A DNA stretch of 64,000 nt from Macrostomum hystrix (lineage: Eukaryota > Animalia > Platyhelminthes): NCBI GenBank assembly GCA_950097015.1, contig CATNEN010000007.1:5270001-5334000 (forward strand), read 5' to 3'. The translations under genes and the position numbers were made by a program. The notes under the pieces are model-generated. The model did no database searches. It was not told the origin of the DNA and was given only the letters and a program-made list of their open reading frames with translations. Positions 27,591-43,847 of the stretch are shown here, one piece after another (the stretch's first letter is position 1; each line of letters begins with the position of its first letter).

Positions 27591-30500
27591 ATGGACCCGG
27601 CAGCTCTGTAAGTGGTACTCGGATACTAGATATATCATGTTGACGATTTGACTGTTGGTTGCTACTGTTCTCAGCAGAGCAGTTTTCCTGCAGTGCTCAC
27701 CCACTGTACTTATAGGCCACAAGAGCATGGCTCAGCAGTAGGCAGCGCTTTAAAAGAGCTGCAAAATATTAGTACTTAGTATGCCATGTTGTTACGCTCC
27801 TAAATTTCTCTATGAACTGAGTCAAAGAAATTAAGCAACACAAGTGAAACAAACAAGTTGCTTGCGTCGGCAAGCAAGACATGATAGCTTTTTAGAATTT
27901 TTAGAATTTCGAATAATCAATCAACGGCCAGAACCTTTGAAAAACTCGACGGTCTGAAGGACAGGCAACTTTAGTGTTGTTTCAGAAGATGCGCAACAAA
28001 AAATAGACTAATGTTCTTAAGTCTCTTGGAAATATTTCCCTTAGTTGTTTTACTGTTAACTCGATAAGTAAGTTACGCCAAACCGGCTATTCGGGGCATT
28101 GACAAAATTTCCACAGTCGATAACAGCCGCGAAAAATCGAGAATGAGCTTTGAAATTAGAGAAGTGATTAAAGAAAGTCAAGTAACTACAATCAGTTAGC
28201 TTCTGTTTCATACTCAAGTTAACTTTGTACTCGTAGTTGCCAGTGGTGAGTTGAATTGTGATCTAGATCTAGGGCCACAAAAACTGAAACCACACACGGA
28301 AGCACTCAAACTGCTTTATTGAAATGCTCCCAGGTGCTTTATTGAAAAACAGAACAGTGACAAGTGATCTCGCATGCTTGACAAAGCCAATCCTTTGCTG
28401 AGCCGTACAAATTCTCGTGCGACTACTGAGTAAATTGTCTGTTTTTTATTGTGCAACTTTAACCCGGTTTACACCTGACAGTTTTGTTATTTAGATTCAA
28501 TTTGCCCCAAGGCCTCCAGCGAAACCTCTTTTCCTTATCTATCCATCCGTTTCGCGCGGTATTTAATCGGAGGAGGCGGTCTAGAATGCGATTTATTAAT
28601 GTACATCCAATGTACATGCGGCGTTTTTGTGTTGTGTGAACTAACCAAGGGAAGACCCAAGGTTTCAGCTCACCCGCCCTATAAAGCTTAAATCGTTTTC
28701 TCTCCGTCTCGTTCCGTTTCTCTCCGTACTGTCTGTCGTGAAAATATTCCAGCCAATTAATGTTCGGCTCGGTGGAAATAATTTTGTTCGCACACTGATT
28801 CGCCAGCAGAAACAGCCGAAAACAGAACTTTGCCAGCTGCAACTGCTGAACTCTCATTAGCCACCGTTCCACAAACCGCCCGCAGCCGTCCGAACTAAAG
28901 TCACTGAGCACCTCTCTTCCGACACTTCCAAGTTGTTTTGCTTGTTTCCACAGACCCTCGAGTCCTGTGATTCTGTTTCTGTCTACCTTAACTGCACAAC
29001 AGCCGCAAACATAGGGAACCTAGTTAAAGGCCGAGGAGGTCAGAGGTCGAGGCCGGCTGCCGCTGGGTGAGTTGTCCCGCTGAGTAGTGACTCAATATCA
29101 ATTATAGACAGTGTCTTCAGCTGCCGTGACAAGTTGCTGTTAGAAGCGAGAAGACACTGCACAATGCTTCTTTCACATGGGGTCTTGAATACAGTTTACT
29201 AAACTGCATGAAAATTTTATTGTTAAAGCATTGGTGAGAGCATGCCATTTACCTTCAACTTAGCATGGATTTCTTAGAAACAATACTTGTTGCTCATAGT
29301 TCGTACTGCTTGTTTTGCCTTTAACAACAAAATCTCACAAAGCAAAGCAAATTGGGGCAACAACCTACACTCATCTCGCATAGATGTTATTCCGAAAATA
29401 TTTAGAGATCATATAAAGAGCTTAATTCTAAAATCTCCTAGAGTCAACTTTCAACGCATCTCGCATGCGCTACTGGCAAGTAGTATATATACTCATAAAA
29501 TCAACAACCGGACGTTAAAAAGTTCCAAACAAAGGAAAGCAAAGCCGCAGTTGCCAATAAAACAGGGTGCACAATTCAAATTTGAAAATACGTTTCGCGT
29601 TACAATTATTTTGTCATTTAAAGTAGAAGTATAAAAGTGCATCCAAACAATCTTCACCACAGTGAGACCGGTGCGACCATCCAGGACATTGACCCGGAGA
29701 TAATTGCCTACCTCGAGGAAGGCTTCAGGAAACTGCAGGCCGATCCTGACTGCAAGTCTCTGCTAAAGAAGCACCTCACTGCCGAGGTGCTACAGAAGCT
29801 GAAGGGACTGAAGACTGCGACCTTTGGATCGACGCTGAAGGATGTTATCCAATCAGGTACGAGCGTGGATATGACACATGAATACATTGTAATTTCAGTC
29901 TTAACTTGACAAACGTCACAATTCGATGTGCAAACTACGCAGGTGTGGAGAACCCGGACTCCGGAGTGGGAGTGTACGCCCCTGACGCCGAGGCCTACAC
30001 GGTGTTTGAGGACCTGTTCGACCCGATCATCGAGGAGTACCACGGAGGCTTCAAGAAGACTGACAAGCACCCGCCGTGCACTCTGGGCGACGCCAGCCAG
30101 TTCGGCGACGTGGACCCGGAGGGAAAGTACGTGGTGTCGACTCGCATCCGCTGCGGCAGGTCGGTCAAGCAGTTCCCGTTCAACCCGAACATGACCGAGG
30201 AGCATTACAGGCAGCTGGAGGAGCTGGTGTCGGGCACGCTGAAGGACCTGACTGGCGAGCTGAAGGGCACCTACTACCCGCTGACCGGCATGACGAAGGA
30301 GGTGCAGCAGCAGCTGATTGACGACCACTTTTTGTTCAAGGAGGGCGACCGGTTCCTGCAGAAGGCGAACGCGTGCCGCTTCTGGCCGACCGGACGAGGC
30401 ATCTACCACAACGACAGCAAGACGTTCCTGGTGTGGGTGGGCGAGGAGGACCACATGCGCATCATCTCGATGCAGAAGGGCGGCTGCATCAGGGAGGTGT

Positions 30501-33500
30501 ACGGCCGGCTGGTGCACGCGGTGAACGAGATCGAGAAGCGCATGGAGTTCAGCCACGACGACCGTCTCGGCTTCCTCACCTTCTGTCCGTCGAACCTCGG
30601 CACCACGATCCGCGCCTCCGTGCACATCAAGCTGCCCAAGCTGGCCGCCGGAGGTCAGGACGCTCTGCAGCGAGTGGCCGACCGCTTCCAGCTGCAGGTG
30701 CGCGGCTCGGCCGGCGAGCACTCCGAGGCCGTCGGCGGTCTCTACGACATCTCGAACAAGGAGCGCATGGGCCTCACCGAGTTCGACGCAGTCAACAAGA
30801 TGAACCACGGCATCGCCGAGCTCATCCGCATGGAGAAGGAGCTCGAGCAGGGCGTCGACTCCGCGGTGGTCAGCTACGTCGAGGCCGGCTTCCACAAGCT
30901 GCAGAGCGACGACTCGTGCCACTCGCTGCTGAAGAAGCACCTCACCCAGGAGGTACTGGACAAGCTGAAGAACCTGAGCACCCCGTCGTTCGGCTCCACC
31001 CTGAAGGACGTCATCCAGTCAGGTGAGGTTTACTACTGCTTAGCATTTTTTCAGCGGGCTGTATTTTCATAATAAAATGTCTTCTGTCACCTAATGTTCT
31101 GCTACTTTTAGAATGAGTATTCGAAATGAACTGGGCTCGCTTTACATGTCCACGACGAAATTTTGGCGCTTTAACTTTGGAAGTTTTCGCCATTGAGGCA
31201 TTCGCCTGTTGGCCTACTGCTCTGATATAAAAATCCAAATATGTATTTTTTTCCTTTTCATGGCCTATCAGACGGTGCTGTTCTTTTGAACCTTTAGTAA
31301 TTGTTGTGTGGTCATGGGCTGTCCCGATTTCTCTGAAATTGTCTGCTTTTATCCGATCGGATATTCGTAACCATGCTTCGTTTATGGGATTGATATGGCA
31401 TTGACTTGATACTCTGAGTTAAATCTTGGCAAAATTTTTCCTCTTCTAGAGATTCTTGAGCTACTGTAATCTAGGACTTGGTGTTTATCTTAATTTCTTT
31501 CTGCTCAGTCCTGACTTGTCATCATATGTAATGAGTACGTGCGACGGATCGCTAAACAGGATCTCCAGAGTCGTGTTGTTTTTGCTGTTGCTAGTGCCCG
31601 GAATTGCGAGGGATCTGTCGATGTGGGTGACTTGTGGGTCACTGGTTTCCTCCACAGATCCAGGAAAGCGAGCCCAGTTGGGGTTGACGGGGAGTTAAAG
31701 AGGTCTGCGTCTTCCACGCAGCTTGCGCTGTGCCTTGTTGGCACCGGTTTCGGAGCGGTCGATTTCCGCGCCCAGAGGAGGATGAGGAGGCAAATGGCAA
31801 ATGTTGTGAAGGACGCAGGCAGAGTGCACATTAGTTATGATGGCGCAGATGTTCTCGCGGTGGCAATAAAGTTGATGAAGTTAAAAAGCGAAAGGCGGAG
31901 ATGATCAGCGCGGATGTTCCTGGCCTGTCTGACCTGTTGGGTGGCATCGTAGCATGGATGGTCAGGATCCTGCGTGCAGAGTTAGAAACGGAGCGGCAAC
32001 CATCTTTGAGTGCTGTTGAACCGGTTGGGAGAGGCATTCTCGGTGCAGTTGTGAGATGCAGAATGCTCTAGTGGCAGCCGGTGATGACCCGGAGGGTGCA
32101 GATTTCGGCAGTTCGGGGCAAGTTCCAGCTGGTGTCACTGAGATATGGTGCCCAGACTGGAGCGCGGTAGTTGGCATGAGACCTTCAAATTGCCTTGAAA
32201 TTTGCCAGCAGCGTTGAGGACGCAGGACTCAGGAAAGCCCTAAGGACGCTGTTGCTGGCGTGGATCTTGTTGGCCATGGCTTCGGTGTGCTCATGGAACT
32301 TAAGCATCAAAGATGACGCCCAGGATTTCCGGTTAGGTGAGGTTGAGAATCGAGTTTCCAGGTGTGAACAGGGAATGGGCATTTCGGAATTCATGCGTGG
32401 TAGAGGAGAACAGAGAGTCTAGATGCGGCTGATGATGGAAGAACGAGCGCAGATGTCAATGTCGATGACGCAGTGAGTCCGGAGCTAAGTCAGCGTGGAA
32501 TCAGGCGGTGACCGGGTGGCTGGTAGTGGCATTCGAGTACTGGAGGCTGATGGGAGCGGTAAGCCTGCGAGACACCGGCCTGCGTGCCTAGCCGCCGACT
32601 CACTGACTGCCTACCCACGAACAAGGACCGGTTTCAGGGTCAGATAGGAGTTATCTGGTGTTTCCAAACAATGCCGCAGCAGAGAGAGTGCCCCTGACGG
32701 TCCGGCTTGAAGCACTCGGAAGAGCGACTGTGAGTCGGCCAGCTACCTCTAAGCCACAGCATTAAAGGCCTGGGCTTTCAGGCTAGGCCTCTCAGCCGAT
32801 GCGCAAAGCGGTCTTCAACGCCCGAAAAAGTGAGGCGGCTGCCACTGCGGCTTCCACGTCTCGTGCCGCCACAGAACCTTCAGCAGAAGCAAGCCGCCGC
32901 CTCCTCCGCTGCGGGTGCCGCCAGTCCAGAGCTCAAATGTGAAATTCACATTTTTCAACGAAAGATAAATGTTTTAGCAGGAATTCACAGCAGAGAATTT
33001 GGCAACGAATGTACAAAAATCATAATTGCAATGGCCTAAAGCTTTCTGTATTTGCTATTAGTTATTAGTTCTGACTAATAGCTGTCTTGTACCCAAAAAT
33101 TCAAGGAAGCGGAATTCACTAACCTCGTTAGTGAGCACGTACGTTTTTTGAATCTGCACTTGTGTACGCTTCCTAAATGCTTCAAAATTCGAATTAGTAT
33201 AAATTTTTTTCTTGAAGGTTTGGGTGTCTGCTAGCTTCCTTTCTGGCATGCAAGCTTCGCGAACGGAACTTTTTTATCCGTTTTGATGTGATAGGCACGA
33301 AATCTATAGATTATCGATGTAATGCAACATTAGAAACAGGTGAATATTATAATAGAGAGTTAAGTCGGGGACCAATTGTTCACGCGATGCGAACTGGAAA
33401 AGTGCCACGACACTATGTAGTACCACTACACTTTTGTAATTGCCATTCATAACAAAAAAATAAAGCCTGTTATCAAACCCTTCTTTTGTCGTTATCTGTG

Positions 33501-36500
33501 CGTCGGTGAATACTTACCTGAGCATTAAGACGCTGAACTGTGAAATTGCGTCCTGGGATTCAAAGGCCTCACGTATTAGCAACATTTATTTCACGATTTG
33601 TCTGTAATCATTTAAGTACACGAGAAATTTTGTGGCTTCAACCAAGTATTCTCTCTCTCATGCACATGTAGTAATTTCGGAGGCGGGTTCAGCAGCTCCG
33701 CTCGCCAGGTGTGTTACAGGTTCGGGTACTTGGGGTTGGTAGCAGAGCGCTTCACGTGTTTGCTTCTCGCACCAAGGTCCATGAGCTCGATTACGTGACG
33801 AGGCCACACTCATTTGGGGCGCATTTTAAGCCCTCGAGGGCCTCGAAGGCACACTGGAAGTGTACACTGCCTGACGATGAGAAACTAAGGGCACATGTAC
33901 AAACCTTCGTGAGCATGGGCCAGCGTACTGTTTCTGTGTGCGTAAGTGTTCAGGAGTAAGTAGCAGAATTGCCCTCCTACCTGGCTGTGTCTAGTGGCAC
34001 CAAATAATAGACAACTGCGAGGAGACTTCTGAAATTTTTATTATTTTCAAATAAGATGAAGCTACGTCTACATCGTTCCAGGCGTGGAGAACCCGGACTC
34101 CGGAGTGGGAGTGTACGCCCCTGACGCCGAGGCCTACACGGTGTTTGCGGACCTGTTCGACCCGATCATCGAGGAGTACCACGGAGGCTTCAAGAAGACT
34201 GACAAGCACCCGCCGTGCACTCTGGGCGACGCCAGCCAGTTCGGCGACGTGGACCCGGAGGGAAAGTACGTGGTGTCGACTCGCATCCGCTGCGGCAGGT
34301 CGGTCAAGCAGTTCCCGTTCAACCCGAACATGACCGAGGAGCACTACAGGCAGCTGGAGGAGCTGGTGTCGGGCACGCTGAAGGACCTGACTGGCGAGCT
34401 GAAGGGCACCTACTACCCGCTGACCGGCATGACGAAGGAGGTGCAGCAGCAGCTGATTGACGACCACTTTTTGTTCAAGGAGGGCGACCGGTTCCTGCAG
34501 AAGGCGAACGCGTGCCGCTTCTGGCCGACCGGACGAGGCATCTACCACAACGACAGCAAGACGTTCCTGGTGTGGGTGGGCGAGGAGGACCACATGCGCA
34601 TCATCTCGATGCAGAAGGGCGGCTGCATCAGGGAGGTGTACGGCCGGCTGGTGCACGCGGTGAACGAGATCGAGAAGCGCATGGAGTTCAGCCACGACGA
34701 CCGTCTCGGCTTCCTCACCTTCTGTCCGTCGAACCTCGGCACCACGATCCGCGCCTCCGTGCACATCAAGCTGCCCAAGCTGGCCGCCGGAGGTCAGGAC
34801 GCTCTGCAGCGAGTGGCCGACCGCTTCCAGCTGCAGGTGCGCGGCTCGGCCGGCGAGCACTCCGAGGCCGTCGGCGGTCTCTACGACATCTCGAACAAGG
34901 AGCGCATGGGCCTCACCGAGTTCGACGCCGTCAACAAGATGAACCACGGCATCGCCGAGCTCATCCGCATGGAGAAGGAGCTCGAGCAGGGCGTCGACTC
35001 CGCGGTGGTCAGCTACGTCGAGGCCGGCTTCCACAAGCTGCAGAGCGACGACTCGTGCCACTCGCTGCTGAAGAAGCACCTCACCCAAGAGGTGCTGGAC
35101 AAGCTGAAGAACCTGAGCACCCCTTCGTTCGGCTCCACCCTGAAGGACGTCATCCAGTCAGGTGAGCTGCTTTCTTTTTCCTGCTTGCTTCCAATGCATT
35201 CTTTGACTTTTGTAATCTTTTGAGACAATATATTAGTCGTTTGACTGGAGCCCTTACGTTTTGAAATTATTTTAGCCTGCTTAGGAGGCTATGTAAACGT
35301 ATTTCGCATGGACTTTCTGTTACAAATCAAGTATTTTTTTGTTCCAATAGTTAAAAGTTATAGTGATACTACCATTTAAACAGCTGCTCACACATGTGCG
35401 CGAAATTGTCGTCTGAGGAGACTTGGTATTCGTCATTACTTTCTTCAATGAATCCTTAACGAAGGCCTTCGTTTTGGTCACCAGAAGACGTCCGTGTTCA
35501 CCAGGAAGACGTCGATATGGAGGCTGTGAAATTCATAAGCAGCATGGGAAGATTTGATCTTAGTCCTATCATCTGAAGTTGCTCTTTGGAAGTCGGCTGA
35601 GACAATTGAGACCTCTTTGTGCCCAATGCTAAATATATTTTAAAAGACGCAGAGGATTCAAAGGCTCCTAGTGCTCGCGTAGTTGTTGTGTCCGCGCCAC
35701 GAAGGTTCGCTTGTGGAAGCTCGTCATAACTTTGACAATATTTGCGTTTAACGACCGTGGCTTTGAAGCACATGGCCAATGAGGCACTCTCGTGAATGCT
35801 TTAGTTTGCAGCTGACAGGTTGAACGGCTAATCAGGACTCCAATATCGCATATTTCTCTTAAAGGGACGTGTTAGTTCAACGCATCGTGATACTTTTTTT
35901 CAGCTCTGCTAGCTTTAGCACTCTCAGAGCGATTCCATTTGGCCCGCAAAAGTGTCCGACTTTATTTTAGCGAGAACATGACAGACTTCAGCAGCGCTAA
36001 GCAACCATAGTTGACCTCATTCTTCTTTGACATCGCTATGTCTGGTATCGAGACGAGTTGGTTAACTTGGGAGGGCGCGCTGATGCCGCACTGGTAGCGT
36101 TCAACGAAGTTAGATTTTTTTATCTTCGATCGAGTCACAGCCGAACGAAGCATATTGTCAAGGCTTACAGCCGGTCAGTTCAATAACTGGCTCTTAAATT
36201 TTTCTTCCTGCTTAATCACTAATGGTTAAAAGCCCAAAGCCGATTTGACAAGCAGCCAATAAACGAGATCACTATTGTTATAATATGGCTCGTAGAAAAT
36301 TTGGAAAAAAATTCATCATGAGTCTACTTTGACTATAGCGCTTGTTACCTTTGATGATGGGCTCTACCACACGGCAAGTGCATTTGATTTATTTTCAATG
36401 TATGTTTATGCGACTAATTTTAAGCCGCATCACGTGTATTCTTTATGACGTGGAAGGAATTGCGGTGCCACCTGACTGTGATTATGTATACTTCCCGCTC

Positions 36501-39500
36501 GATATATATCCACCTGCTGCGGACAGTTAATTAAATTCAAGGCTTCACACTGGTTCTTTATTGTTAGGTTGCAAAAAGCTTACCGGCCATTCTTCCAGGA
36601 AGGAGTGCTTCCAGGAATTCACAAAATAATTATCCTCCAAATGTAACGCTTTCTTTACTTTTCAGAAAAAACGTCAGAAAAATAAACGCCGTTAGGACAG
36701 ACGTACGAGTATATCATTCAATAGTTTGTTGTAATTGCTCCCAAGTAGCAGTGGAAGGGTAGGTCTCCGATTGCTTGAAACTCCCAGGTCCCGACCAAAA
36801 ACATCTGCCCCGGACACCTGAGACGGAGCCCTGCACAGCGAGAGCTCACCGCTCTGGCTCACCGACGGCGAGAGTTCACCCCTCTGGGTCACCGACTATC
36901 CCAAAATGAGGATGCACGTGGACCCCTCTAAATTTTAGGGCACGTTAATTATCTTTGACTACATGCAAGCAACGACCAGGCAACAAAAAAGTATAAAATC
37001 TCAAATTATTTAAAATATGAGTACTTTAAAATTACTGAATTTTTAATTCTTTCCAGTGTGTAATTCTGTTTATGTTTTTTCGCGTAGGGTACTAAATCAG
37101 TAAAAAACGTGTGAATGCTCCTTGATATCCAGCTATAGAGATTGCCTCGAAGCATAACTTTTCGAACGTTAAATTAATCCTTGCAGGTGTGGAGAACCCG
37201 GACTCCGGAGTGGGAGTGTACGCCCCTGACGCCGAGGCCTACACGGTGTTTGCGGACCTGTTCGACCCGATCATCGGGGAGTACCACGGAGGCTTCAAGA
37301 AGACTGACAAGCACCCGCCGTGCACTCTGGGCGACGCCAGCCAGTTCGGCGACGTGGACCCGGAGGGAAAGTACGTGGTGTCGACTCGCATCCGCTGCGG
37401 CAGGTCGGTCAAGCAGTTCCCGTTCAACCCGAACATGACCGAGGAGCACTACAGGCAGCTGGAGGAGCTGGTGTCGGGCACGCTGAAGGACCTGACTGGC
37501 GAGCTGAAGGGCACCTACTACCCGCTGACCGGCATGACGAAGGAGGTGCAGCAGCAGCTGATTGACGACCACTTTTTGTTCAAGGAGGGCGACCGGTTCC
37601 TGCAGAAGGCGAACGCGTGCCGCTTCTGGCCGACCGGACGAGGCATCTACCACAACGACAGCAAGACGTTCCTGGTGTGGGTGGGCGAGGAGGACCACAT
37701 GCGCATCATCTCGATGCAGAAGGGCGGCTGCATCAGGGAGGTGTACGGCCGGCTGGTGCACGCGGTGAACGAGATCGAGAAGCGCATGGAGTTCAGCCAC
37801 GACGACCGTCTCGGCTTCCTCACCTTCTGTCCGTCGAACCTCGGCACCACGATCCGCGCCTCCGTGCACATCAAGCTGCCCAAGCTGGCCGCCGGAGGTC
37901 AGGACGCTCTGCAGCGAGTGGCCGACCGCTTCCAGCTGCAGGTGCGCGGCTCGGCCGGCGAGCACTCCGAGGCCGTCGGCGGTCTCTACGACATCTCGAA
38001 CAAGGAGCGCATGGGCCTCACCGAGTTCGACGCCGTCAACAAGATGAACCACGGCATCGCCGAGCTCATCCGCATGGAGAAGGAGCTCGAGCAGGGCGTC
38101 GACTCCGCGGTGGTCAGCTACGTCGAGGCCGGCTTCCACAAGCTGCAGAGCGACGACTCGTGCCACTCGCTGCTGAAGAAGCACCTCACCCAGGAGGTAC
38201 TGGACAAGCTGAAGAACCTGAGCACCCCGTCGTTCGGCTCCACCCTGAAGGACGTCATCCAGTCAGGTGAGTCATTCGTTCTTATTTCGTTTCTTGTGCA
38301 ATAATGAATCAGAGGCTGAGACCTGGTAGTCTATTAGTCGCTTCTTGTGAGAATTTTCGCGTGCATGAATTGTTCAGTCTCTATGCCGAGTCTTTATCCC
38401 TAATGACCAGTTTGTGCTTTTTAGACCGTCTGGTTCTCTGTAACGAAGTTGGGAGCCTTATGATTAGCGGCTAGCTGAACTTAAGACAATTAAATTAGAA
38501 GAAACAATAGTGGGGGTGAAAAAATAGGCGTAAATTTCGAAGTACAATATCCAGATAAATAATTGTGGATTGCTTGCTTTGAATTGACTCTGCTTTTTCG
38601 TGATTTAATTCACAAACAAGCGGAAGAATTTAAAGGATTAGATTGCAATTGATAATCTGGCAATTGTGAGATCATCAGCAATAATTGTATTTATTTTATA
38701 CTTTCTTATCTTTTCAGTGCATGAACTTAAAAAGCTTTTAAAAGCAAAGCAATTATTAATCAGCAACTCAAACGTAACGCAACAGCAAAGGTGCCCGAGG
38801 CCGTCCAGCATGGCGCTGTAGGGTTGGCGGGACAAGTGAACATGTGCGCCATTGTGTGCACACCAGTCAAGCTTTGGTGGCACTGTCCTGGCTTCAGGCG
38901 GGTTCAGAAATTTCGTTTCGCTAGCTAGGTGACTGGCGTGGCCGCTCTGCAGATGTGTGACGCCTCTCTTGTAGAAAGCAGCTCTTGTATGAACGTAAAC
39001 ATACGACGTTGATTTTTGCTGAATAACCTGAAAGCATCTTTAGAGATGTCTAGAGTCAATCCTCAGCCAAATTGTTGGGCACAGTCAAGGCTAGAAAAAG
39101 CTCCTTCATATAACAATAATAATAATACAATTAATAAAACATGGCCCGAAAATGGGGGGGGAAGCGACAAAACGCGCGCTTAAGGACTAGTTCGCGGACA
39201 TGTTTCACTCCGTCAGCCTGGCTCGGGGCACACGCGTCGGAGAAGAGCAGGTCGATGTAACAGGCCGATCGTCCCTGTCCGCGCCTGCGCGGTCCCTGCG
39301 TAGTCCACAGAAGCACATCCTTCAGCGGCTCAGGGCAGTAGGCTTCAGCCCTGATAACGTGCCCAGCCAGCCGCAGGCGCCGCTGTCTCAGCAGGCTGGA
39401 ACGTCAGTCGCGCTTGCTTGTACAGTGAGTCGGTCGTGTCGCTTCCAGGGCCGCGGCGGGCGCTAAACGAAGCGCGAAGCAGGGCAGCATGTGTCGCGAT

Positions 39501-42500
39501 GAGCTGCCTCTCGAGCGCCTCTGTCAGAGTCCAGGTCTCCGCATTATAGAGCAGCAAGGTCTCAACGACCGCCTGGAAGAGCTGCGACCTGGCACTGTCC
39601 GTCAGCGCTCGAAAGCAGCACCGTGCGCACTGATCGAAAGGCGGCCCAGGCCTTGCCGCACCGTCTCGCCAAATCGTCGCTCATGCCCGGCACTAGTCCG
39701 CCGATGATAAACGAACTGGCGGCACCTCGGAAGCGGGGTCCGTGGCCGCTGTCGTCACGGAGCAGAATCTCGGCCGGCAGATTGTGCGGCACCGTCAGCA
39801 CCTCGGTCTTCTGCGCGTTCACGATGAGACCGACTCGCCGCCGCCTTTGTCAGGCCATCCAGCAGCCGTTGGGCGCCTTCGAACGTCGAAGACAGCAGCG
39901 CAATGTCGTCTGCGTGGCCGAGAGCGCAGAGCCTCTTCTCGGGGTGCCGCCGGCTCGTGCGCCGACTCAGCAAGAAGCCGTCGTCCGCTGATGGCAGGCC
40001 GGTCCGGAGCACCCAGTCCATCACCAGTACGAATAGAAAAGGCGCCAGCGTGTCCCCCTGCAGCACTCCCGAGGTCGTGCTGAACAGGTCCGACAAGCCG
40101 TCTGGCGTCACTACCGCAACGATGATGTCCACGTACAGCGCCATAATGGGGGTAATCAGCTGCTGCGGCACATTGTAGGTCCAGAGCACCAGGGGCAGCG
40201 CGTCACGTACCACCGAGTCGAAAGCCCGGCATAAGTCCACGAAAAGAGCAACCAGGATTAACTGGTGGATGCGCGCTTCTTCGATGATGCGGTGGAGGGC
40301 CAGGATTTGCGTCACTGTGCCGCGGTGGGGCCGGAACCCGTTCTGTTCGTGTGGAGCCCGGCTTCTTCGGTATTCCAACGATGTGGGCAAAAGTCCACTC
40401 GTGAGGCGCAAAACCTCCTGCCAAGACGAATCGATTTCTATTACAGACTATTAGCATATTTATGTTTTTAAATTCCGTTCCAAACTTATTTACTAATTAT
40501 TGACATTCAGACATTCTACTCGATGATTACCAAGGATTACTGCTGCGACAATAACTCATAAAAAGATTCAAAGCAATATTGAAATAAAATGCATTCCAGG
40601 TGTGGAGAACCCGGACTCCGGAGTGGGAGTGTACGCCCCTGACGCCGAGGCCTACACGGTGTTTGCGGACCTGTTCGACCCGATCATCGGGGAGTACCAC
40701 GGAGGCTTCAAGAAGACTGACAAGCACCCGCCGTGCACTCTGGGCGACGCCAGCCAGTTCGGCGACGTGGACCCGGAGGGAAAGTACGTGGTGTCGACTC
40801 GCATCCGCTGCGGCAGGTCGGTCAAGCAGTTCCCGTTCAACCCGAACATGACCGAGGAGCATTACAGGCAGCTGGAGGAGCTGGTGTCGGGCACGCTGAA
40901 GGACCTGACTGGCGAGCTGAAGGGCACCTACTACCCGCTGACCGGCATGACGAAGGAGGTGCAGCAGCAGCTGATTGACGACCACTTTTTGTTCAAGGAG
41001 GGCGACCGGTTCCTGCAGAAGGCGAACGCGTGCCGCTTCTGGCCGACCGGACGAGGCATCTACCACAACGACAGCAAGACGTTCCTGGTGTGGGTGGGCG
41101 AGGAGGACCACATGCGCATCATCTCGATGCAGAAGGGCGGCTGCATCAGGGAGGTGTACGGCCGGCTGGTGCACGCGGTGAACGAGATCGAGAAGCGCAT
41201 GGAGTTCAGCCACGACGACCGTCTCGGCTTCCTCACCTTCTGTCCGTCGAACCTCGGCACCACGATCCGCGCCTCCGTGCACATCAAGCTGCCCAAGCTG
41301 GCCGCCGGAGGTCAGGACGCTCTGCAGCGAGTGGCCGACCGCTTCCAGCTGCAGGTGCGCGGCTCGGCCGGCGAGCACTCCGAGGCCGTCGGCGGTCTCT
41401 ACGACATCTCGAACAAGGAGCGCATGGGCCTCACCGAGTTCGACGCAGTCAACAAGATGAACCACGGCATCGCCGAGCTCATCCGCATGGAGAAGGAGCT
41501 CGAGCAGGGCGTCGACTCCGCGGTGGTCAGCTACGTCGAGGCCGGCTTCCACAAGCTGCAGAGCGACGACTCGTGCCACTCGCTGCTGAAGAAGCACCTC
41601 ACCCAGGAGGTACTGGACAAGCTGAAGAACCTGAGCACCCCGTCGTTCGGCTCTACCCTGAAGGACGTCATCCAGTCAGGTGAGTTGATTTCTTTTCTAA
41701 TTTACAAGCTGTCAAGAATAAATCTATTTTTTTTCCTCATGAGTTACTAATTTATTTTTGGTTCTTGAAGTTGACATTAGTATATTTTCTTTGGGAATGA
41801 TTTTTAGTGTGATTCAATTTACTTCTGCTGTTAAAATGTGATGTTGACGGGCTTATAGGCAAATTACCGCTGCTCCCCTGCACGGCAACGCTGATGTTAT
41901 TATCTATTTTTTGTTTACAAGCAGGACGCGTTTTGGAATGAGAAAGAATAACTTAATTCGACGGTCAGTAGAGCTTAAATAACATGGCTAATCACATTAC
42001 AAAATATTCACTGCACTCTTGCTTGGTGTTTAAAGAAAATTTGGGATGACCATGTTGAGGATGCTTGCCACAGAAGTCCTGAAATAAGACGGTAGACTGT
42101 GCTTTCTGGTGTCTGGCAGAGCATGCACGAAGATGAAAGACTAAATGCCCAGGCTTAGGTACTGAATAATCACGAGGATTATGGACTGAAGGAACAGGAG
42201 GATTATGGACTGAAGGAACAGGAGGATAATGTACTGAATGAACAGGAGGATAATGTACTGAATGAACAGGAGGATAATGGACTGAAGGAACAGGAGGATA
42301 TTGGACTGAATGAACAGGAGGATAATGGACTGAATGAACAGGAGGATAATGTACTGAATGAACAGGAGGATAATGGACTGAATGAACAGGAGGATAATGT
42401 ACTGAATGAACAGGAGGATAATGTACTGAATGAACAGGAGGATAATGGACTGAATGAACAGGAGGATAATGTACTGAATGAACAGGAGGATAATGGACTG

Positions 42501-43847
42501 AATGAACAGGAGGATAATGTACTGAATGAACAGGAGGATTATGGACTGAATGAACAGGAGGATAATGTACTGAATGAACAGGAGGATAATGTACTGAATG
42601 AACAGGAGGATAATGTACTGAATGAACAGGAGGATAATGGACTGAATGAACAGGAGGATAATGTAATGAATGAACAGGAGGATTATGGACTGAATGAACA
42701 GGAGGATTATGGACTGAATGAACAGGAGGATAATGGACTATATGAACAGGAGGATTATGGACTGAATGAACAGGAGGAAAATGGACTAAATGAACAGGAG
42801 GAAAATGGACTGAATGAACAAGAGAGTTATGTGGGGCAGATGGCAGAGGGCAGATGACGCATATCTTTTTTGATCAGTAATTTTTTTCTATTATTGTCTC
42901 ATGGCTATGCACTTACACAAACTCCCTCCCATATTCCAGGCGTGGAGAACCCGGACTCCGGAGTGGGAGTGTACGCCCCTGACGCCGAGGCCTACACGGT
43001 GTTTGCGGACCTGTTCGACCCGATCATCGAGGAGTACCACGGAGGCTTCAAGAAGACGGACAAGCACCCGCCGTGCACTCTGGGCGACGCCAGCCAGTTC
43101 GGCGACGTGGACCCGGAGGGAAAGTACGTGGTGTCGACTCGCATCCGCTGCGGCAGGTCGGTCAAGCAGTTCCCGTTCAACCCGAACATGACCGAGGAGC
43201 ACTACAGGCAGCTGGAGGAGCTGGTGTCGGGCACGCTGAAGGACCTGACTGGCGAGCTGAAGGGCACCTACTACCCGCTGACCGGCATGACGAAGGAGGT
43301 GCAGCAGCAGCTGATTGACGACCACTTTTTGTTCAAGGAGGGCGACCGGTTCCTGCAGAAGGCGAACGCGTGCCGCTTCTGGCCGACCGGACGAGGCATC
43401 TACCACAACGACAGCAAGACGTTCCTGGTGTGGGTGGGCGAGGAGGACCACATGCGCATCATCTCGATGCAGAAGGGCGGCTGCATCAGGGAGGTGTACG
43501 GCCGGCTGGTGCACGCGGTGAACGAGATCGAGAAGCGCATGGAGTTCAGCCACGACGACCGTCTCGGCTTCCTCACCTTCTGTCCGTCGAACCTCGGCAC
43601 CACGATCCGCGCCTCCGTGCACATCAAGCTGCCCAAGCTGGCCGCCGGAGGTCAGGACGCTCTGCAGCGAGTGGCCGACCGCTTCCAGCTGCAGGTGCGC
43701 GGCTCGGCCGGCGAGCACTCCGAGGCCGTCGGCGGTCTCTACGACATCTCGAACAAGGAGCGCATGGGCCTCACCGAGTTCGACGCCGTCAACAAGATGA
43801 ACCACGGCATCGCCGAGCTCATCCGCATGGAGAAGGAGCTCGAGTGA
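27591..43847 (+). CDS. Five-domain arginine (phosphagen) kinase, about 1812 aa; exons 27591-27607, 29663-29856, 29943-31022, 34082-35161, 37187-38266, 40600-41679, 42940-43847
   Basis: AK motifs [53 protein letters not shown]; all junctions GT-AG and frame-compatible (5439 nt total); only the last exon has a stop; the 17-nt first exon (AAACATG, GTAAGT donor) is the least certain part. Confidence 0.88.
31640..32700 (-). mobile_element. Decayed non-LTR retrotransposon fragment (Ingi/Vingi-like RT C-terminus) in AK intron; boundaries approximate
   Basis: Broken-frame motifs ILGVIFD, FHEH...[45 protein letters not shown]...LDLW. Confidence 0.6.
33732..34010 (+). mobile_element. Diverged copy of the tRNA-derived SINE
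   Basis: Colinear similarity to 218-550 (CGCACCAAGGTCC, CATTTGGGGCGCA, GTACACTGCCTGACGATGAGAAA, GCAGAATTGCC, CACCAAAT). Confidence 0.8.
39108..40409 (-). mobile_element. 5'-truncated, decayed RTE-like LINE in AK intron
   Basis: [47 protein letters not shown]; (TTA)n tail; possible degenerate TSD AAAAGCTCCTTC 39096-39107 / AAAACCTCCTGC 40410-40421. Confidence 0.82.
42170..42825. repeat. 24-bp minisatellite (ACTGAATGAACAGGAGGATAATGG)n in last AK intron
   Basis: Tandem periodicity. Confidence 0.95.

Follow-up and report, generated by a model that had tools for sequence, protein, structure and literature searches.

Near-identical arginine-kinase exons between unrelated introns in the flatworm Macrostomum hystrix: probable upkeep of an old array by exon-limited gene conversion

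The tandem coding repeats of spider silk genes are uniform within each gene, and their introns are homogenised to the same degree as the exons or even further, a sign of unequal crossing-over. Contiguous phosphagen kinases, to our knowledge, have been described with two or three domains. In the current study, we analysed a window of 64,000 nucleotides (nt) from Macrostomum hystrix (assembly GCA_950097015.1, contig CATNEN010000007.1, positions 5,270,001 to 5,334,000 of the forward strand), in which a five-domain arginine-kinase gene (hereafter the C7 gene) carries five nearly identical exons separated by introns that do not resemble each other. In mammals, it has been demonstrated that the paralogues BMP8A/B, DDX19A/B and TUBG1/2 undergo concerted evolution by GC-biased gene conversion, and a raised G+C content at third codon positions (GC3) in the converted regions is an accepted sign of this bias (PMC2720389). 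According to a review on Caenorhabditis (PMC3966223, section 4.2), most reports of conversion concern exons, since the faster divergence of introns takes them below the level of homology required. We estimate at roughly 0.8 the probability that the repeated exons of the C7 gene are kept uniform by non-allelic, DNA-templated gene conversion and that the array is old. Exon-limited concerted evolution by gene conversion is not a new process, and the novelty of this locus lies in being a very clean example of it, in a gene with unusually many fused kinase domains.

Exon uniformity and intron divergence in the five-domain gene

Direct comparison of the five copies of the repeat exon located the variable sites at exactly offsets 2, 67, 91, 119, 263, 848, 1007, 1013, 1043 and 1055; the stretch from 264 to 847 is invariant. 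Offsets 67 (E/A) and 91 (E/G) are second codon positions and the remaining eight sites are synonymous; pairwise identity among the exons is 99.5-99.9% with synonymous sites included, and about 99.6% overall. In 20-nt windows outside the exons, identity drops to chance within a few bases of the AG/G and G/GTGAG boundaries. Moreover, introns 1-4, the 86-nt intron i0 and the flanks gave no blastn match to each other (word size 7, E<=1), and the first and last 70 nt of the C7 introns were also without similarity to each other. The initial annotation of this DNA had found the same ten variable sites by eye, two of them non-synonymous, and the same invariant stretch from 264 to 847, all of which agrees exactly with our comparison, while its intron lengths (3059, 2025, 2333 and 1260 nt) and the lack of relatedness among introns were borne out by measurement and by blastn. 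Clear homology between introns, which it had named as a finding that would contradict its reading, was looked for by blastn and is absent.

The features of the C7 gene in the window are given below, with N0 denoting the unrepeated N-terminal exon:

27591-27607, + strand: exon 1, ATG plus 14 nt, then donor GTAAGT; reads MDPAA and joins 29663 in frame
29663-29856, + strand: exon 2 (N0), unrepeated N-terminal half (first kinase domain), not homogenised; Pfam PF02807 positions 2-36
29857-29942, + strand: intron i0, 86 nt, phase 1, GTACG..CAG
29943-31022, + strand: repeat exon copy 1 (1080 nt), which covers the kinase body, the linker and the N-terminal segment of the domain that follows
31023-34081, + strand: intron 1 (3059 nt), not related to any other intron of the gene, with a short interspersed element (SINE)-like element at 33732-34045
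34082-35161, + strand: repeat exon copy 2 (1080 nt)
35162-37186, + strand: intron 2 (2025 nt), single-copy genome-wide (self-match only)
37187-38266, + strand: repeat exon copy 3 (1080 nt)
38267-40599, + strand: intron 3 (2333 nt), containing a retrotransposon relic of old date (about 39142-40350) and a reverse-transcriptase open reading frame (ORF) at 39755-40411 on the minus strand
40600-41679, + strand: repeat exon copy 4 (1080 nt)
41680-42939, + strand: intron 4 (1260 nt), including a minisatellite of 24-nt units at 42161-42824
42940-43847, + strand: last repeat exon (copy 5), in common with the others over 905 nt, followed by TGA (43845-43847)

All copies are preceded by AG, and copies 1-4 are followed by GTGAG. 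At the junctions, a glycine codon is split between the last base of the preceding exon and the first two bases of the repeat exon, and therefore all introns are in phase 1 and the repeated unit is exactly 360 codons. In translation, each repeat exon contributes roughly 300 residues of the arginine-kinase body, which are followed by a short linker and by the 57 N-terminal residues of the domain after it. In homology searches, performed exon by exon or with database proteins, the repeat unit matched Pfam PF00217 (E=7e-75) and PF02807 (E=9e-24); its translation includes the motif CPSNLGT, and among solved structures in the Protein Data Bank (PDB) the best match was to 4rf6, a two-domain arginine kinase (E=3e-198), and crosses a domain junction. 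Judging from its sequence, each repeat exon is predicted to encode one arginine-kinase unit, and the predicted reading frame (exon 1, N0 and the repeats) extends over 5436 nt, or 1812 amino acids (aa), with five complete kinase domains. The closest database proteins are from Macrostomum lignano, whose orthologues likewise start with MDP, and a search of collapsed protein representatives, among which close relatives are merged, returned only distant multi-domain kinases at about 50% identity.

The contents of the introns provide an indication of how long they have been separate. The relic in intron 3 matches RVT_1 (Pfam, E=9e-15) and is 76-90% identical to its many genomic kin, the SINE-like element in intron 1 (310 nt) is 70-81% identical to many genomic copies, and the minisatellite in intron 4 consists of 27.7 repeats of its 24-nt unit; none of these insertions is common to two introns. 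The 2 kb of intron 2 gave no further match in the 220-Mb genome that was searched (42 contigs) and contain no Pfam-recognisable ORF, and Pfam scans of 15 further intron ORFs returned no family. The kinds of insertion proposed in the initial annotation were thus recovered (a reverse-transcriptase relic in intron 3, a SINE-like element in intron 1 and a minisatellite in intron 4), while its names "Vingi-like" and "RTE" were left unconfirmed. Because these insertions are old and private to single introns, the introns must have been apart much longer than one would gather from a silent divergence of 0-1.4% in the exons. The same transcript also contains an exon that has escaped uniformity, N0, which is diverged from its repeated counterpart (38/58 aa and 119/175 nt identical); the initial annotation had counted about 38/57 aa.

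The sharing of variants among copies is not tree-like either, again in line with the first reading of the sequence: copies 1 and 4 share their state at offsets 263 and 848, copies 3 and 4 at 91, and copies 2 and 5 at 2. Site 91 is incompatible with 263 and 848 in the four-gamete test, with derived alleles common to non-adjacent copies, at the low power that ten sites afford. The closest exon pairs, copies 1-4 and 2-5, are likewise non-adjacent, and the introns that flank them are unrelated. A past duplication of a three-unit block, which these two pairs might suggest, was rejected, as introns 1 and 4 are unrelated.

These observations bear directly on unequal crossing-over between misaligned exons, by which whole units of exon plus intron would be gained and lost and which we consider unlikely as the main homogeniser. 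It would benefit from the fact that any register shift stays in frame, since the repeat exons are all 1080 nt long with phase 1-1, and it would be consistent with a domain number that varies between species and among M. lignano gene models. However, each expansion of this kind duplicates an intron, yet the four introns of C7 and the two of its three-domain paralogue (the C1 gene, described below) are mutually unlike and carry old private insertions; moreover, the most similar exons are not neighbours and lie between unrelated introns.

Paralogous genes and signatures of conversion

Two related genes were found elsewhere in the genome, a three-domain paralogue on contig C1 and a single-domain gene on contig C34, and the latter has an intron at the same codon. 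The position and design of the former are as follows:

G000:C1:18328130-18334590 (loci L020, L022): three-domain paralogue, composed of N0, two exons of 1080 nt and a terminal exon

The contrast between uniform exons and dissimilar introns was also observed in the C1 gene. Its exons differ by 1-3 nt per 905 among themselves and by 72-75 from the C7 exons, and the distance at four-fold degenerate sites is 0-0.014 within either gene, 0.31 between C7 and C1, and about 0.76 to the single-domain gene. The two introns of C1 measure 1031 and 2042 nt and resemble each other only in the 12-18 bases that immediately precede the exon, a stretch also found in the short first C1 intron. Besides, all six internal introns of the C7 and C1 genes start with GTGAG, whereas all three N0 introns start with GTA.

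The distribution of the few remaining differences is informative as well. In C7 they lie near the exon ends, with a mean distance to the nearest end of 97 nt compared with 270 expected (P=1e-4), and the same was observed independently in C1 (P=1.4e-3); such clustering at the edges is expected if conversion tracts have to lie inside homology. In addition, the repeated bodies have a GC3 of 0.92-0.93 and the repeated N-terminal segment one of 0.97, compared with 0.67 in N0, an exon of the same gene (Fisher test of 0.97 vs 0.67, p=5e-5) and 0.78 in the single-domain paralogue (0.93 vs 0.78, p=2e-7), and weak-to-strong differences outnumber the reverse by 60 to 15. The GC3 excess of the repeated exons is a mark of GC-biased conversion.

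Exchange may have extended beyond the single gene. Between C7 and C1, exon offsets 329-541 (e.g., 30271-30483 in the window; on the C1 side, 18328441-18334590) form a tract of about 213 nt with only 2 differences. Four-fold degenerate differences amount to 1/27 within this tract compared with 34/107 elsewhere (p=0.0025), and the single-domain gene, which served as a control, diverges evenly there. This pattern suggests an ectopic conversion between the C7 and C1 genes that later spread to all copies.

The nature of the template can be addressed with the same two genes. If the gene's own spliced transcript, or complementary DNA (cDNA) made from it, served as the repair template, splicing itself would set the exon-exact boundaries of the five-domain gene, and the initial annotation had offered this possibility because of the sharp boundaries; indeed, the identity in C7 begins and ends at splice junctions in all copies. 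Under such a scheme, the intron bases common to the C1 introns would be leftovers of selection on splice signals. Nevertheless, the 12-18 bases before the C1 exons are common to introns that are otherwise unrelated, and the difference between GTGAG and GTA starts means that intron position +3 travels with the upstream exon. Intron bases that travel with exons favour a DNA template, as a spliced template cannot carry them. Furthermore, the homology of copy 5 stops inside the exon, at offset 905, where a splice site is absent, and the location of the differences at exon ends suits a limit imposed by DNA homology. Repair from cDNA over the junctions should also delete introns, but none has been lost, and neither duplicated introns nor an intronless or processed copy was found in the genome. 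With co-homogenised intron ends and a copy 5 that ends away from any splice site, a spliced template is disfavoured and appears to us very unlikely.

Comparison with Macrostomum lignano and age of the array

Macrostomum lignano, compared here through its protein sequences, has orthologues of both genes, one type (A) being 92-95% identical to the C7 domain and the other (B) 88-90%, and the domains within each M. lignano protein are nearly identical. The gene models have 1, 4 or more, 5 and 6 domains in the A type and 2, 4 and 5 in the B type, compared with 3 in the C1 gene. The models P0270, P0386-P0395 and P0275 span 1, 2, 4, 5 and 6 domains, which may reflect copy-number variation between homeologues or incomplete models, and exon skipping would also yield shorter in-frame enzymes, because the repeat exons are 1080 nt long with phase 1-1. 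In P0270, domain 3 (residues ~789-1181) has a 34-aa internal tandem duplication (EEHYKQ...TGMTK twice), for which an assembly or annotation error is possible.

A tree of the 300-residue kinase bodies grouped the domains by gene and species and not by position (support of 96/94 for C7, 92/94 for lignano A and 95/88 for lignano B), confirming the clustering within species that had been anticipated for converted copies; clustering by position across species, which the initial annotation had named as contradicting its reading, is the reverse of this result. At 25 amino-acid positions, all five copies of the C7 gene have one residue and all six M. lignano copies have another, and only 2-3 amino-acid positions are variable within either species. 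The N0 segments showed the opposite pattern, since they pair by position across species (support of 96/94 and 95/92), and a topology that unites the C7 N0 with its internal counterpart was rejected by the approximately unbiased (AU) test (p=0.002). The corresponding tree of N-terminal segments from this genome only gave AU p values of 0.24 and 0.08, and became informative once the M. lignano segments were added. It follows from the pairing of N0 across species and from the AU rejection that the multi-domain state predates the species split and that the bodies have been homogenised since; on these protein alignments, the common ancestor with M. lignano had at least two domains. Altogether, the cross-species grouping, the second gene, the old private insertions, the edge clustering and GC3 support the initial proposal of an old array held uniform by ongoing conversion limited to exons.

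A young array, in which a recent tandem duplication would have been followed by the rapid replacement or scrambling of introns, might explain the high identity of the exons, synonymous sites included, but we consider it extremely improbable: no similarity is left even in the terminal 70 nt of the introns, their insertions are 10-30% diverged from their kin and 2 kb of intron 2 are unique, M. lignano also has the multi-domain state and a distinct N0 exon, and the intron position is also present in the single-domain gene. Even though the assembly could in principle have mixed the reads of five similar exons and exaggerated their likeness, such an artefact is hardly credible, as ten copy-specific differences persist, unique introns of 1.3-3 kb anchor the copies, a second locus and the M. 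lignano proteins, which were assembled independently, show the same pattern, and polishing is unable to turn a divergence of about 25% (as in N0) into 0.4%.

Some points nonetheless weigh against the conclusion that conversion has kept an old array uniform. The evidence is at the level of the assembly, and a minor artificial smoothing of the exons by polishing is possible. The interlocus tract at offsets 329-541 was picked after viewing the data, and support is only moderate (70/88 and 81/91; AU p=0.16) for the clades that join the N0 segments, and the internal segments, of the two paralogues. The five-copy state need not be ancestral, and the comparison between the species covered protein sequences. 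Domain number also differs between the species (5 vs 5-6 and 3 vs 4-5), and thus crossovers or independent expansions occur in the genus, with no duplicated intron left in this genome. Because copy numbers differ, unequal crossing-over probably contributes somewhere in the genus.

Under DNA-templated conversion, the history of the locus may be outlined as follows. The five exons would be copies of one ancestral arginine-kinase unit, made of exon plus intron, whose duplication would be old, the multi-domain state being older than the split from M. lignano. Thereafter, the exons would have been repeatedly overwritten by each other through homologous repair without crossover, and the introns would have drifted and gained different insertions until their pairing became impossible. 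Heteroduplexes would then end where homology ends, at the exon ends or a few bases past them, and the molecular pathway that we infer would accordingly combine non-crossover repair with a block imposed by heterology. Purifying selection on the enzyme would keep the exons similar enough for conversion to go on, and GC-biased mismatch repair could have pushed third codon positions to 92-97% G+C.

Significance and relation to known systems

The locus represents a clean natural experiment, with eight near-identical 1-kb exon copies in two genes, introns without homology, an exon that escaped conversion within the same transcript and serves as internal control, and orthologues in a laboratory model flatworm. 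It presents side by side a conversion that reaches the last homologous base, an efficiency that falls toward the edges, and a GC3 raised by about 30 points within one gene, and, in Macrostomum lines, it could serve to measure how long tracts are, how edges affect them and how strongly they favour GC. Besides, the genes considered here include arginine kinases in which five to six identical domains are fused, and selection for such polymers calls for an explanation. Literature searches returned nothing relevant on a multi-domain arginine kinase of Macrostomum or on exon-restricted conversion in phosphagen kinases.

Fusion of whole kinase domains in tandem is shared with the arginine kinase of Anthopleura (4rf6), the taurocyamine kinase of Schistosoma (4wo8) and the flagellar creatine kinases; however, the first two have two domains and the last have three, in contrast to the five domains of C7, which are 99-100% identical. 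The domains of such contiguous kinases are 56-88% identical to each other in the database examples that were compared, and the range extends from 56 to 100% once all other multi-domain phosphagen kinases from the databases are included. Three four- or five-domain arginine-kinase-like proteins from ENA (P0271, P0272 and P0276) are about 47% identical to the C7 protein and have domains that are 99-100% identical to each other, and the same homogenisation may therefore recur in unrelated lineages.

Among systems of concerted evolution, spider silk genes resemble C7 in that tandem coding repeats are kept uniform, but unlike those of silk the C7 introns are unrelated. Gene pairs of the BMP8A/B type (PMC2720389) share with the C7 gene a mosaic evolution and a GC3 that is raised in the converted parts; in those pairs, however, whole genes are involved, with two per genome and introns that are homogenised together with the exons, whereas here the units are single exons within one gene, in five or three copies and with the introns excluded. 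The mechanism put forward in the review on Caenorhabditis (PMC3966223) is the one argued here. Nevertheless, the Caenorhabditis cases concern separate genes with mostly short introns that are often co-converted, while in the genes of M. hystrix the exchange is intragenic, takes place across kilobase introns and leaves a measurable gradient at the exon edges.

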